Source: Neoechinorhynchus agilis (lineage: Eukaryota; Animalia; Acanthocephala). From it: DNA of 64,000 nt. Shown here in pieces: positions 56,520 through 64,000 of the stretch (positions within the stretch are counted from its first letter, which is position 1; the number at the start of each line of letters is the position of its first letter). The position numbers were made by a program, and so were the translations under genes. Below the pieces are notes generated by a model, which saw only the letters and a list, made by a program, of their open reading frames with translations, searched no databases and was not told the DNA's origin. The stretch spans positions 16,966,784-17,030,783 of the forward strand of contig CM121341.1 of assembly GCA_051530055.1 (NCBI GenBank), in the 5' to 3' direction.

Positions 56520-57787
56520 ATGAATACTGTCCTCTTTTCGATATTAATCACCGTTGCCCTTGTGCAGCATTCGTATCCAACGGAACTGACGTTCAATTTA
56601 CCAGCCGGGAAAAAGCAATGTTTCTATGAAGAATCAAAACGCATTGAAGTTGATGTGGCTCTTCAGTTCCAGGTCGTTGCCGGTGGACATGATGACGTAA
56701 ACGTTGAACTCTATTCTCCGTCAGGACAGTTGTTGTTCTCGGTTAAACATGAGGACTATGGTCAATATTTTAATTCTACAACTGAAACGGGAATTTACAA
56801 GCTATGCATTAGCAACGAGTTCTCCACAATGACAAGCAGGCTAGTCTACTTTAATTTTGAGATTGATGAGGAAAGTGAAGAGGATGAGCGAATCTCTGGG
56901 AATGGTGTAGGAAGGCACGCAGGACCTTTGACATTGTTCGCAGCAAAATTAAAAGGTATTCATGCAAATTTGGATAAAATCCAGGAGGCGTTGACTTTAA
57001 AGCGCTTATTACGACCAGGCTTAAAATCTAATTTTTAATACGATAGTCTTTTGAATACGAATTCAATCCAATGCTCGTCACAGTCTTGTTTAAATAAGTT
57101 CTATTCGTTTTAAATCTTCGAATATCGTTTCTACTAGCCTTGTAAAATGCTACTTAATTCGCCAACCGCATGTTCAAGCTTTGTATTTTCGAAAATGGAC
57201 GCTTGAGAGAGGGGAGGGCTATTGTAATGACAAAAAAAATTTTTTTTAGAGCTTTCGACAACTTACGGCTTCGGCATACATTTTTTAAAAGCGAATTGTT
57301 TTCTCAACTTTTTTGAATTTAATTGGACGCTTGAGAGAGAAGGTTGTTGTAATGGCAAAATGAAAAATCTTTATATTTTAGAGCTTTCGATGTCTTACGG
57401 CTTAAGCTCAGGAATCTACAAAGTGGTGTGGAGATGTAAAGTGGGTTTTAACATAGCGACATCGAAGCCCTGAGGAAAACATAAGAATTCGAAAGGTTGG
57501 AGGGTAAAGTTTCTTTTTGTCATTACAGAAGGCTTCCCTGTCAAGTGTCCATTTTCGAAAAAGAAACCTTTTTCATTTCCCGTTCCAAATTTTATTTTTA
57601 ACCTTTGAACTAAAATATAGTCCTAATACGCGCTCCACAACGCCTGTCAGAATCTCATGACCGATTCATGTTAAAGAAACTCGGCAGGAAAGTTCGGAAT
57701 TGGAGTGTTGGTCAATTGATGGTGATCGCATTGATTGGATTTGCACAGGTTATGCTTGTTAAGAGTTTCTTTTATAATCGAAGATAA
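56520..57787 (+). CDS. TMED7: p24/TMED (gamma subfamily, TMED7-like), 2 exons
   Basis: ELTFNLPAGKKQCFYE..FQVVAGGHDDV..YKLCISNEFST..VYFNF. Last exon 57621-57787: RKVRNWSVGQLMVIALIGFAQVMLVKSFFYNRR*. Confidence 0.88.
57165..57570. mobile_element. MITE-like element in the TMED intron (related pieces at 1395-1490, 20440-20530, 56019-56375)
   Basis: TTTTCGAAAATGGACGCTTGA..TGTAATGACAAAAA and its inverted copy at 57515-57565, with an internal ~135-bp duplication. GTCTTACGGCTTA.G.TCAGGAAT shared with ~1460. Confidence 0.55.
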
Positions 57788-57860: not shown

Positions 57861-58244
57861 ATGTCGTCTCAGCGATTACGTGCCAATGATCTTCGAAAAA
57901 AGAGTCGAGATGAACTGGAGAAGCAATTGGCTGAATTGAAACAAGAACTAACGACGGTCCGTGTCTCGAAAGTCGCGGGGGCGTCTGGTTCGGTTAAAGT
58001 CGGTAGAATTCGTCAGATCCGGAAATCGATTGCTCGTGTTTTGACCATCATGAATCAAATGCAAAAGGAGAATTTGATAAAGTTGTACCAACACAAAAAA
58101 TATAAACCGATCGATTTGAGACCAAGACTTACAAGAGCTCTGCGTCGGAGACTAACTCCATATGAAGCAAAGAAGAAGACCAGGAGGACAATAAGGCGGG
58201 AAAGACTATCTCGTCGAAGAATGTATGCGCTTAAAGCCGTTTAG
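57861..58244 (+). CDS. RPL35: 60S ribosomal protein L35 (uL29)
   Basis: LRKKSRDELEKQLAELKQEL..IRKSIARVLT..KYKPIDLRP. Confidence 0.98.
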   Translation: MSSQRLRANDLRKKSRDELEKQLAELKQELTTVRVSKVAGASGSVKVGRIRQIRKSIARVLTIMNQMQKENLIKLYQHKKYKPIDLRPRLTRALRRRLTPYEAKKKTRRTIRRERLSRRRMYALKAV

Positions 58245-58920
58245 ACAAATCTTGTTCAATTAAGACCACCCTTTTGAACGTATTTGTTTCAAAACCATTT
58301 TCGTTTTAGTGAACAAATCTCCGGTTCGAAATGATGATCATATTTAAAACTATAATTAAGGTCTGAAACAATGACCATTCTGAATTTTCGCGGCGAACGA
58401 AAAAAATAGGCTAGAATAATTATTCCTCAAGAAGCCTTTTTAACTTTTCATCCTTTCCGTTGTCGTTTTTACGTAAGGAAATTAAATTTTTCAGCACCCA
58501 AAATTTTTTTTATTCGCTCCTCCAATTAAACTTCGTTTAGTCGTTTAAAGATAAAAAATGGAAGTGATGATAATGAGTTAAATTGAACATTGAAATGTGC
58601 CTAATTGGCCAAATGAACACCTCTGTTCTTATTCATTCTCAATTTTTCTTCCCGGTCACAACTGCTGATTGGTATTTGTTGAAATGATGATTCGCAATTA
58701 CGATTTGTTTTTCGCCATTTTGGTTTTTTCTATTTCGTTACTTTGTCTTGTTATCTGACCGGCATAGAAGTTCGCTGGGCCGCCTTCTCTTTCTGAGCAT
58801 TTAAATTTCTTTGTGGAATTTATTATTTTGATCATTCTAAAAATTTTCATTGATTAAAATAAAATGCATTCTTTAATCTAAGTTTTTTGCTTGAATCTCA
58901 TAATTTGTTTTATATGAAGG

Positions 58921-58999
58921 ACGGAAATGATGATCCCGAATTTAATTGAATAGTGAAATGTGCTTAAGCGGCCAAATGTGTTCCTCTCGTCTGATCCGT
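58921..58999 (+). ncRNA. Box C/D snoRNA S2, guide complementary to the 28S sarcin-ricin loop; copies at C-box 58927, 60052, 61176, 62296, 63423
   Basis: C box ATGATGA 58927-58933, D box 58991-58994, stem ACGGA/TCCGT. Guide GTTCCTCTCGT pairs 11/11 with ACGAGAGGAAC. Confidence 0.75.
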
Positions 59000-59487
59000 T
59001 TCTAGATTTTTCGTTTTTTGCTTCAAGAGTTCATTTCCAATCTATATTTTTAATTATTTCTGATACGTTCGCGGCATTTTCATAGATATTTAAATCTTAG
59101 TCCGGTTGTAGCTTTTAGAATCAATAAATTAGACATGCAATTTTAGTTCCAATGTTTTTTCATAGATTTTATTATGTTTTTAAAGTTACTGTACAAAAGT
59201 TGCACGCTTTTCAATTATTTTATTTGCTGCTTAATGGACGATGTCATTGAAACTCAATAGTTCAATGAGTTCGCTTAGCCAATCGCACTTTTTTATGCGT
59301 TCTGTTAATGCTTTCGAAAGCTCTCGTTTTTATGCTTTCGGTTAACTTAGATTTTTCTCATTTCATCTTAAAGACAAGATAATAAAATGATATTGAATTC
59401 TACTATTCCTGAAATGATTATTTAAAGCTGGAATTACTGTCTGAAAAATGACGATTTCTTTAAATCTGACCGGACATTTTGATCTAA

Positions 59488-59557
59488 GTCAAATGATGAC
59501 CATCTGACGATTCTGAACTTTCGTGACGACATGGGATTGTCTCGTTCGTCTGATGAC
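59488..59557 (+). ncRNA. Box C/D snoRNA S3, predicted 18S guide (probable human Am1383 equivalent); copies at C-box 59493, 60619, 61740, 62864, ~63990
   Basis: C ATGATGA 59493-59499, D' CTGA 59513-59516, C' GTGACGA 59523-59529, D 59550-59553, stem GTCA/TGAC. Guide GTCTCGTTCGT pairs 11/11 with 18S ACGAACGAGAC. Confidence 0.85.
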
Positions 59558-61926
59558 CTTTCTAAATTTTACTTCCTTTCCGTTGTCGTTTTTATGGAAG
59601 GAAATTAATTTTTTAGAGCACTCAAAATTTTTTTATTCGCTCCTCTAACTGAACCTCTTTTAGCCCATTAAAGATAAAGAATGGAAGTGATGATAATGAG
59701 TTAAATTGAACATTGAAATGAGCCTAATTGGCCAAATAGCACCGCTTGTCTGATTCATTCTCAGTTTTTATTCTCGGTCACAACTCCTGATTTCCATTTG
59801 TTGGAATGACGATTCGCTAGTTAGATTTGTTTTTTTGCCATTTTCGTTTTTTCTATTTCGTTACTTTGCATTGTTATCTGACCGGCGTAGATGTTCGATG
59901 GGCCGCCTTCGATTTCTAAGCAATTTAATTTTTTCATCCAATGAATTATTTTTGTTCAAGTGGAACTGTTTCATTTATAAAAATAAAATGCATTTTTTTA
60001 ATTGAAGTTTTTTGCTTGAATCTCATAATTTGTTTTATATAAAGGACGGAAATCATGATCTAGAATTTAATTGAATAGTGAAATGTGCCTAAGCGGCCAA
60101 ATGTGTTCCTCTCGTCTGATCGGTTTCTGGATTTTTCGTTTTTTGCTTCAACATTTCATTTCCAATGTATATTTTTAATTATTTCTTATACGTTCGCGGC
60201 ATTTTCATAGGTATTTAAATCTTAGTCCGGTTGTAGCTTTTAGATCCAATAAATTAGACATGCAATTTTAGTTCCAAGTTTTTTTCATAGTCTTTATTAT
60301 GTTTTTAAAGTTACTGTACAAAAGTTGCACGCTTTTCAATTATTTTATTTGCTGCTTAATGGACGATGTCATTGAAACTCAATAGTTTAATGATTTCGCT
60401 TAGCCAATCGCACTTTTTTTATGCGTTCTGTTAATGTTTTCGAAAGCTCTCGTTTTTATGCTTTCGGTTAACTTAGATTTTTCTCATTTTGTCTTAAAGA
60501 GAAGATAATAAAATTATATGGAATTGTACAATTCCTGGAATGATGATTTAAAGCTGGAATTACTGTCTGAAAAATGACGATTTCTTTAAATCTGACCGGA
60601 CATTTTGATCTAAGTCAAATGATGACCATCTGACGATTCTTAATTTTCGTGACGACATGGGATTGTCTCGTTCGTCTGATGACCTTTCTAACTTTTACTT
60701 CCTTTCCGTTGTCGTTTTTACTGAAGGAAATTAATTTTTTTAGCTATCAAACAATTTTTTATTCGCTCCTCTAACTGAACCTCTTTTAGCCCATTAAAGA
60801 TAAAAAATGGAAGTGATGATAATGAGTTAAATTGAACATTGAAATGAGCCTAATTGGCCAAATTGCACCTCTTGTCTTATTCATTCTCAATTTTTATTCT
60901 CGGTCCCAACTCCTGATTTCCATTTGTTGAAATGACGATTCGCAAGTTCGATTTGTTTTTTGCCATTTTCGTTTTTTCTATTTCGTTGCTTTGTCTTGTT
61001 ATCTCACCGGCATAGAAGTTCGCTTTACCGCCTTCTCTTTCTGAGCATTTAAAATTTTTTGAGGAATTTATTCTTTTTGTTCAATGGAAACTTTTTCATT
61101 TATTAAAATAAAATGCATTCTTCAATCTAAGTTTTTAGTTTAAATCCCATAATTTGTTTTAGATAAAGGACGGAAATGATGTTCCCGAATTTGATTGAAT
61201 AGTGAAATGTGCCTAAGCGGCCAAATGTGTTCCTCTCGTCTGATCCGTTTCTAGATTTTTCGTTTTTTGCTTCAAGAGTTCATTTCCAATCTATATTTTT
61301 AATTATTTCTTATACTTTCGCGGCATTTTGATAGATATTTAAATTTTAGTCCTGTTGTAGCGCTTAGATCCAATAAATTAGACTTGCAAGTTTAGTTCCA
61401 ATGTTTTTTTCAGTCTTTATTATGTTATTTAAGTTACTGTACAAGAGTTGGATGCTTTTCAATGATTTTATTTGCTGCTTAATTGACGATGTCATTGAAA
61501 CTCAATAGTTCAATGAGTTCGCTTAGCCAATACAATCTTTTTTATGTGTTCTGTTAATGTTTTCGAAAATTCTTGTTTTTTTCTTTCGGTTTTAAAATTT
61601 TTTCTCATTTCGTCTTAAAAAGAAGATAATAAAATGATATTGAATTCTACTATTCCTGAAATGATTATTTAAAGCTGGAATTACTGTCTGAAAAATGACG
61701 ATTTCTTTAAATCTGACCGGACATTTTGATCTAAGTCAAATGATGACCATCTGACGATTCTTAATTTTCGTGACGACATGGGATTGTCTCGTTCGTCTGA
61801 TGATCTTTCTAACTTTTACTTCCTTTCCGTTGTCGTTTTTACGGAAGGAAATTAATTTTTTTAGCTATCAAACAATTTTTTATTCGCTCCTCTAACTGAA
61901 CCTCTTTTAGCCCATTAAAGATAAAA

Positions 61927-62006
61927 AATGGAAGTGATGATAATGAGTTAAATTGAACATTGAAATGAGCCTAATTGGCCAAATTGCACCTCTTGTCTGA
62001 TTCATT
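61927..62006 (+). ncRNA. Box C/D snoRNA S1, predicted 28S guide for the yeast Gm2791 (snR48) equivalent; copies at C-box 58564, 59687, 60813, 61934, 63058
   Basis: C box GTGATGA 61934-61940, D box CTGA 61997-62000, terminal stem AATG(G)AA/TTCATT. Guide GCACCTCTTG pairs with 28S CAAGAGGUGY; D+5 is the G. Confidence 0.75.
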
Positions 62007-62738
62007 CTCAATTTTTATTCTCGGTCCCAACTCCTGATTTCCATTTGTTGAAATGACGATTCGCAAGTTCGATTTGTTTTTTGCCATTTTCGTTTTTTCT
62101 ATTTCGTTGCTTTGTCTTGTTATCTCACCGGCATAGAAGTTTGCTTTACCGCCTTCTCTTTCTGAGCATTTAAATTTTTTGAGAAATTTAATCTTTTTGT
62201 TCAATGGAAACTTTTTCATTTATTAAAATAAAATGAATTCTTCAATCTAAGTTTTTAGTTTAAATCTCATAATTTTTTTTATATAAAGGACGGAAATGAT
62301 GATCCCGAATTTTTATTGAATAGTGAAATGTGCTTAAGCGGCCAAATGTGTTCCTCTCGTCTGATCCGTTTCTAGATTTTTCGTTTTTTGCTTCAAGAGT
62401 TCATTTCCAATCTATATTTTTATTTATTTCTTATATGTTCGCGGCATTTTTATATATATTTAAATTTTAGTCCTGTTTTAGCGCTTAGATCCAATAAATT
62501 AGACATGCAAGTTTAGTTCCAATGTTTTTTCATAGTCTTTATTATGTTATTTAAGTTATTGTACAAAAGTTGGAGTATTTTCAATGATTTTGTTTGCTGC
62601 TTAATTGACGATGTCATTGAAACTCAATAGTTCAATGAGTTCGCTTAGGCAATACCACCTTTTTTATGTGTTCTGTTAATGTTTTCGAAAATTCTTGTTT
62701 TTTTTGCTTTCGGTTTTAAAATTTTTTCTCATTTCGTC

Positions 62739-63257: not shown

Positions 63258-64000
63258 GTAGATGTTCGATGGGCCGCCTTCGATTTCTAAGCAATTTAAT
63301 TTTTTCATCCAATGAATTCTTTTTGTTCAAGTGGAACTGTTTCATTTATAAAAATAAAATGCATTTTTTTAATTTAAGTTTTTTGCTTGAATCTCATAAT
63401 TTGTTTTATATAAAGGACGGAAATCATGATCTCGAATTTAATTGAATAGTGAAATGTGCCTAAGCGGCCAAATGTGTTCCTCTCGTCTGATCGGTTTCTG
63501 GATTTTTCGTTTTTTGCTTCAACATTTCATTTCCAATGTATATTTTTAATTATTTCTTATACGTTCGCGGCATTTTCATAGATATTTAAATCTTAGTCCG
63601 GTTGTAGCTTTTAGATCCAATAAATTAGACATGCAATTTTAGTTCCAATGTTTTTTCATAGTCTTTATTATGTTTTTAAAGTTACTGTACAAAAGTTGCA
63701 CGCTTTTCAATTATTTTATTTGCTGCTTAATTGTGCGATGTCATTGAAACTCAATAGTTCAATGAGTTCGCTTAGGCAATATCACCTTTTTTATGTGTTC
63801 TGTTAATGTTTTCGAAAATTCTTGTTTTTTTGCTTTCGGTTTTAAAATTTTTTCTCATTTCGTCTTGATGAGAAGCCAATAAAATGATATTGAATTCTAC
63901 TATTCCTGAAATGATTATTTAAAGCTGGAATTACTGTCTAAAAAATGACGATTTCTTTAAATCTGACCGGACATTTTGATCTAAGTCAAATGATGACCAT

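Follow-up and report, generated by a model that had tools for sequence, protein, structure and literature searches.

A tandemly repeated candidate box C/D guide RNA complementary to the sarcin-ricin loop in Neoechinorhynchus agilis, with a paralog that fits helix 88

An element with the complete anatomy of a box C/D snoRNA, here called S2, carries an 11-nt guide that is perfectly complementary to the 28S rRNA's sarcin-ricin loop (SRL) in Neoechinorhynchus agilis, in a register that opposes its D+5 position to the second G of the GAGA tetraloop. Cleavage by alpha-sarcin falls after this same G (PMC6562825), and the SRL, the target of ricin-type and sarcin-type toxins alike, ranks among the best conserved elements of ribosomal RNA and those most critical for function. 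The anatomy of S2, its pairing and register, its paralogy with a neighboring RNA (S1) and its sequence constraint can all be read in the DNA of the window, by which we mean the whole stretch of 64,000 nucleotides that was analyzed, and in the remainder of the assembly. We consider it quite probable that S2 is a genuine box C/D guide gene, under constraint and directed at the SRL. Our main reading goes one step further, to a working guide that methylates the sarcin G, and we give this prediction a probability of roughly one half. Here we reason from the general rules for C/D snoRNPs, from which we infer assembly of the RNP, its methylation activity and any consequence for the ribosome: the S2 RNA would assemble with Snu13, Nop56, Nop58 and fibrillarin and pair through its 11-nt D guide with the unfolded SRL in pre-28S rRNA, and fibrillarin would then 2′-O-methylate the nucleotide opposite D+5, the second G of GAGA (G2661 in E. 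coli).

The copy of S2 flagged for study (u1) occupies positions 58919 to 59001 of the window on the forward strand. The sequence-only reading had placed a snoRNA guide there, and the sequence, the box-and-stem scan and the fold bear this out, with a C box, a D box and a terminal stem of seven pairs. From 5′ to 3′, the RNA comprises a stem strand GGACGGA (58919-58925), the C box AUGAUGA (58927-58933), an interior of 46 nt between C box and guide, the D guide GTTCCTCTCGT (58980-58990), the directly adjoining D box CUGA (CTGA in the DNA; 58991-58994) and the second stem strand TCCGTTT (58995-59001), which pairs with the first. Scan and fold agree on the composition of the stem (five Watson-Crick and two G-U pairs). 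The stem adjoins the D box, and a single unpaired nucleotide separates it from the C box, in line with a K-turn. In the thermodynamic fold the terminal stem closes the RNA and the remainder is weakly structured, which is usual for the class. The part of the interior that is common to S1 and S2 (58944-58977) is probably a degenerate D′/C′ region with a small GCC/GGC hairpin; only degenerate candidates for internal boxes are present in this core (UUGA or GUGA, UGAAAUG), and its scan against rRNA gave no complement and no D′ guide. A match of the core to the 5′ end of 28S rRNA (ATGTGCTTAAG) was dropped, as most copies read GCCTAAG. With its C and D boxes, its terminal stem, an antisense element within the 10-15 nt found abutting D or D′, and its D+5 targeting, S2 resembles the canonical C/D guides.

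Pairing was examined on the 28S rRNA of the same genome. The guide forms 11 of 11 possible Watson-Crick pairs with ACGAGAGGAAC, which confirms on the animal's own rRNA what had been proposed for both the pairing and the position of D+5. The 28S sequence reads ...AAGTACGAGAGGAAC[C/T]GCAGG... at all 14 places found, and AGTACGAGAGGAAC occurs at 14 places in the genome, all of them 28S copies or fragments, with the SRL core intact in every copy read. The flank of the SRL stem is CUUGCUAAGUACGAGAGGAACCGCAGG or CUGCAAGUACGAGAGGAACUGCAGG depending on the rDNA copy, and the 11-nt target of S2 is identical in all. In the resulting register, D+1 falls on the A preceding CG, D+3 on the first G of GAGA, D+4 on the ricin A, and D+5 (C58986) on the second G, the alpha-sarcin G. 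The D+5 rule holds for consensus D boxes (PMC5389607). The duplex is exactly 11 bp long, with the next two guide bases unpaired, and its energy of -19.2 kcal/mol is on par with that of neighboring guides of accepted type (-18.0 and -18.1 kcal/mol). Accessory pairing of S2 with the rRNA around the SRL is no better than in shuffles. This counts against efficient methylation, as does the length of 11 bp, which is near the lower limit for it; the target counts against it as well, since few ribosomal nucleotides are as sensitive in function (PMC6562825).

S2 is one component of a tandem array of snoRNA units of 1.12 kb, arranged head to tail on the forward strand from 58320 to the end of the window at 64000. 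The array begins about 60 nt past the stop codon of RPL35, downstream of this gene; it consists of 14 units, five of them within the window, and extends some 10 kb beyond the window end. Two further C/D snoRNAs of the unit serve as positive controls. X1 (59411-59480, forward strand) has a D′ guide that makes 15 pairs (13 of them Watson-Crick) with 18S rRNA at GCGGUAAUUCCAGCU and sets D′+5 on the U of GGUAA. On the yeast map this target corresponds to Um578, a site of the snR77/SNORD65 type. X1 also has a weak Rfam similarity to snoR77Y and TtnuCD7. X2 (59494-59556, forward strand) carries two guides with 11 of 11 pairs each, one for 28S rRNA (AAUCGUCAGAU) and one for 18S rRNA (ACGAACGAGAC). 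The guides of X1 and X2 thus identify the array as a cluster of rRNA-guide genes in which 11 bp is a normal guide length. At gathering thresholds Rfam has no match anywhere in the window, and at permissive settings it returns sub-threshold C/D matches only. Two minor elements of the array deserve mention. Between X2 and S1 (59574-59606), once per unit, lies an invariant run of 20 nt, TCCTTTCCGTTGTCGTTTTT, which forms one arm and the loop of the hairpin CCTTTCCGT...ACGGAAGG; its role could be that of a processing signal, or it could itself be a further small RNA. In the first array unit, a short rearranged C/D-like element of about 60 nt (58326-58389; ATGATGA...CTGA...CTGA) stands in place of X1 and X2.

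As a chance control we used the 378 CTGA sites in the 58 kb of window sequence outside the array. None of these 378 sites abuts a perfect rRNA complement of at least 11 nt; three reach 10 nt, all three without a C box, and the chance expectation per CTGA site is about 0.0014. As no control site reaches 11 nt, and as the same unit holds four other good rRNA guides, the pairing of S2 with the SRL is not a chance match. One may still ask whether the SRL is a secondary match and the true target is another RNA, such as an snRNA, an mRNA or a spacer transcript. The UGU 5′ of the guide is unpaired with the SRL flank and recurs in the rice snoRNA snoZ173 (see below), which could hint at a longer target. 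Yet the only places with the complement extended to 13 nt, CGAGAGGAACACA, are the array itself and one genomic site that is not RNA-like, and the next best sites in rRNA and its spacers need four to six G-U pairs and a mismatch. Another substrate is accordingly a very improbable explanation of the guide. Near matches to guide plus D box with one mismatch in the same genome include none with a C box.

The origin of the guide is best discussed with its paralog. The S1 copy of unit u4 lies at 61926-62046 on the forward strand; its C box GUGAUGA starts at 61934, its guide GCACCTCTTGT (61986-61996) precedes a CUGA at 61997-62000, and a second CUGA (62034-62037), 37 nt downstream, is closed by a stem of 8-10 bp. 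S1 may therefore be a longer RNA whose proximal box serves as D′ and whose guide is a D′ guide. The common core of S1 and S2, expressed as a 34-nt pattern, occurs 10 times in the window and 0 times in shuffles, in agreement with the earlier proposal that the two are paralogs; the array as a whole has 27 occurrences (14 in S2 and 13 in S1). Both RNAs are confined to this array in the 46-Mb assembly. The S1 guide is GCACCTCTTGT in most copies, GCACCGCTTGT in u2 and degenerate in u1, and the S2 guide differs from it at D+3, D+9 and D+10. The 5′ part of S1 (61940-61961 and the equivalent positions of other units) holds the second-longest invariant run of the array, the 22 nt ATAATGAGTTAAATTGAACATT, which pairs over 13 bp (one of them G-U) with 18S rRNA at UCAAUUUGACUCA and may be a second guide of S1, of the D′ type.

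An exact-match scan of the S1 guide against rRNA gave no target. With G-U pairs allowed, the guide pairs with helix 88 of 28S rRNA at GCAAGAGGUGU through nine Watson-Crick pairs and two flanking G-U pairs (-18.0 kcal/mol), and D+5 falls on the fifth base, a G. The target continues as ...UCAGAAAAGUUACCACAGGGAUAAC, and the spacing of G5, G7 and G29 in it is that of Gm2791, Gm2793 and Gm2815 in yeast; the distance from the S1 target G to the ricin A is 238 nt here versus 236 nt in yeast. In helix 88, Gm2791 and Gm2793 are guided by snR48 in yeast, and the corresponding G2792 and G2794 of Arabidopsis by SnoR1 (PMC5389607, PMC8053127, PMC5199042). S1 is like snR48 and SnoR1 in directing its guide to the helix-88 G (yeast Gm2791, Arabidopsis Gm2792), a likeness known by target fit (PMC5389607, PMC8053127); S1 has no Rfam match to a family of the snR48/SnoR1 type. 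S2 is unlike them in its three guide differences from S1 and in aiming at helix 95, not at helix 88. Cross-pairings are weak, at -11.5 kcal/mol for S1 on the SRL and -7.7 kcal/mol for S2 on helix 88. Since the site kept by S1 is an old one, conserved between yeast and Arabidopsis, the simplest view is that S2 is the derived copy. The fit of S1 to the Gm2791-equivalent G and the weak cross-pairings support the retargeting that the sequence-only reading had suggested: S2 would stem from a duplicate of a helix-88 guide of the S1 type, switched to its present target by three substitutions in the guide. The exact S1 target is present in four to five of the nine 28S copies read, and the rest have a G>U change or a divergent helix 88. 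The rDNA copies are thus heterogeneous at this helix, which reads GCAAGAGGUGU, GCAAGAUGUGU or the quite different UUAUGAUGUGCUUU.

To quantify constraint, the 14 units were aligned and parsimony changes were counted on their tree. Per column, the alignment mean is 0.46 changes, with 0.36-0.49 in the spacers, 0.30 in S1 and 0.13 in S2. A stretch of 32 nt that comprises part of the S2 core, the guide and the D box (TAAGCGGCCAAATGTGTTCCTCTCGTCTGATC) has zero changes in the 14 units; it is the only zero-change window of this length among 1106, where about 14.8 changes are expected (Poisson 4e-7). The D box CUGA and the guide are invariant in 14 of 14 copies. Comparison of the diverged edge unit u1 with u4 gives the same picture: 2 of 85 positions differ in S2, against 126 of 765 in the spacer (Fisher p = 1e-4), and in u1 the S1 copy has decayed, with box and guide lost, while S2 is perfect. 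These results are good evidence that the guide and D box of S2 are under constraint. The sequence-only reading had not noted that S2 is better conserved than any other piece of the array, nor that only a minority of its copies have a canonical C box.

The C box is AUGAUGA in u1, u4, u8 and u14, AUGAUGU in u3, u10 and u12, and AUCAUGA (G3>C) in the remaining 7 of the 14 copies, which we call variant B. Within the window, all on the forward strand, u2 (60044-60126) and u5 (63415-63497) are variant B, u3 (61168-61250) is the AUGAUGU type (variant C), and u4 (62288-62371) is canonical. The variant B change hits the G of a sheared G-A pair; the same seven copies also have C>G in the 3′ stem strand, and the resulting G-G mismatch breaks the terminal stem. 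Judged by their boxes and stems, four copies are fully canonical, three are nearly so and seven are probably impaired. Variant B forms a young clade in the unit tree, so its intact guide says little. The two changes of variant B (at the equivalents of u1 positions 58929 and 58997) are mutually complementary and would permit an alternative helix, GAAAU[G/C] with [C/G]GUUUC; they look like a compensatory pair, though the canonical K-turn geometry is destroyed.

The condition of the copies bears on a rival account, in which a snoRNA satellite has left S2 as a by-product that is neutral or in decay: a duplicate of S1 that came to match the SRL by chance, with little or no expression and no effect on the ribosome, and uniform through recent amplification and gene conversion within the array. 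Seven of the 14 copies have a C-box change that is predicted to be disabling and three more have A7>U, the array clades in the unit tree are young, and S1 and S2 are restricted to this one array, all of which this account would explain. Part of the invariance of S2 may indeed come from recent amplification or gene conversion and not from selection, as half of the copies keep the guide despite the G3>C change in the C box and the stem mismatch. The match itself fits the account poorly. With about six rRNA 11-mers within three substitutions of any guide and 4455 possible triple mutants, a drifting triple mutant would perfectly match some rRNA site about 0.1% of the time, by a back-of-the-envelope estimate. 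Moreover, no other stretch of the unit is as conserved as guide and D box, which are intact on the long branches of u1 and u14, where spacers differ by at least 16% and S1 has decayed. On balance we find a by-product of this kind somewhat unlikely.

Contigs of long-RNA-type runs from the animal gave no evidence of a mature S2 RNA of about 80 nt, which weighs on the side of such a by-product. In three RNA-type runs, RPL35 is covered at a depth of 900-2600 versus 15-60 in its surroundings; over the array the same type of run gives low-depth contigs (3-48), which could be explained by carried-over DNA of a repeat that a DNA run places at 16-40 copies. One mismatch-free contig (RNA-type run X3, 61085-61566) spans the S2 copy of u3, and here too DNA carry-over is possible. 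The best named relative of the RPL35 protein is that of Pomphorhynchus laevis (60% identity), and within 10 kb of its RPL35 locus there is no snoRNA array and no such guide. A metagenome scan for C box, guide and D box gave three matches, which were dismissed as GC-rich or lacking a stem and as about the number expected by chance. No archaeal-type sRNA with the same guide and register was found in a scan of prokaryote genomes.

A working S2, as our main reading has it, would modify a site that is bare in the available maps. The complete list of 2′-O-methylations in yeast 25S rRNA ends at Cm2959, well short of the SRL (PMC5199042), a review of plant rRNA describes the S/R loop as seemingly without 2′-O-methylation (PMC11542601), and the nearest human site named is Gm4618, guided by SNORD91, in the stem of helix 95 (PMC12288042). 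These three sources agree with the earlier statement that no conserved methylation is known at the sarcin G, and our search turned up no organism with reported ribose methylation in the SRL tetraloop. No occurrence of the guide together with its D box was found in the papers searched; the bare 11-mer occurs in about 43 papers, of which the 20 listed are, to judge by their titles, unrelated and mostly primer-type uses. Arabidopsis supplementary tables gave no such guide. S2 would hence be an RNA of a well-known kind with an unprecedented target. SNORD91 resembles it as a box C/D guide that acts on helix 95 (PMC12288042) and differs in the place of its target, as Gm4618, by our own count, lies in the 3′ strand of the stem, outside GAGA and about 12 nt downstream of the sarcin G.

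The closest sequence likeness is a plant family in Rfam that the sequence-only reading had not mentioned. The consensus D guide of snoZ173 from rice (RF00313), ...CCACCUGUGUUCCUCUCGAUCUGA / ...CUGUGUUCCUCUCGAUCUGA, includes the same 13 nt as the S2 guide region, UGUGUUCCUCUCG, which gives it complementarity to the SRL along CGAGAGGAAC. With scores of 19.9 bits (u1) and 19.6 bits (u4) against a gathering threshold of 70, S2 does not belong to this family. The two also differ in register: snoZ173 has one extra base before CUGA, which would place D+5 on the ricin A and not on the sarcin G, and two positions next to its D box are unpaired with the SRL. To judge from snoZ173, C/D guides complementary to the SRL would not be wholly unheard of; a report of the modification itself was not found.

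A third relative, TtnuCD32 of Tetrahymena, suggests a different role. This C/D snoRNA has, like S2, a long complementarity to the SRL region (15/16 nt at the base of the stem-loop); its predicted site showed no methylation, links of the RNA to 5.8S processing and a 26S fragment are described, and a chaperone role has been proposed for it (PMC6315972). It is a caution against assuming methylation in S2, and a model for an expressed S2 snoRNP that binds the SRL of pre-rRNA with little or no methylation, in the role of a chaperone for folding or assembly, or of a timer for helix 95; the constraint on the guide would fit such a role equally. In TtnuCD32, however, the complementarity includes box D (PMC6315972), whereas in S2 the guide directly adjoins a consensus D box and has the standard register, and the general rule is that a substrate bound at D+5 gets methylated. 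S2 also lacks the extended or accessory pairing typical of processing snoRNAs. A chaperone without methylation thus appears quite improbable to us.

If, as the main reading predicts, S2 methylates the sarcin G, several consequences would follow. The SRL tetraloop would gain its first known modification, the translational GTPase center would have to tolerate 2′-O-methylation of the sarcin G, and a new rRNA modification could arise from a duplicated guide by three point changes. The methyl group would also remove the 2′-OH that ribotoxins of the sarcin class use as nucleophile. Constitutive methylation of the sarcin G through a recruited helix-88 guide might then make the ribosomes intrinsically immune to ribotoxins of the alpha-sarcin, restrictocin and hirsutellin type; we regard this as an unlikely outcome, which if true would be the first snoRNA-based toxin resistance and possibly a new way of resisting ribotoxins. 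The principle has been demonstrated for bacterial Hen1 repair, where a methylated 2′-OH cannot attack the phosphate and methylation at the cleavage site by Pnkp-Hen1 or Pnkp1-Rnl-Hen1 gives immunity to the same ribotoxin (PMC4411300). Unlike the predicted action of S2, the Hen1 systems are protein-only and act by repair after damage on tRNA-type substrates, not by pre-emptive, snoRNA-guided modification of rRNA.

Two further observations were made along the way. Directly before the RPL35 start codon (window position 57861), the contigs from RNA-type runs carry 21 nt that are absent from the genome (ATATTTAAAAACTTACAAGCA), and contigs join position 56998 to 57637 without GT..AG ends; these two features may stem from trans-splicing of a spliced leader to an operon-like TMED7-RPL35 pair. 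In the rDNA (contigs C1, C2, C4 and C14), many 28S copies are 3′ fragments that start at position 1889/1890 or about 2390 of the Rfam LSU model, and in the one full rDNA unit read, 8.6 kb are inserted between model positions 2343 and 2389. Fragments and an insertion of this kind are typical of the insertion sites of rDNA-specific retrotransposons.
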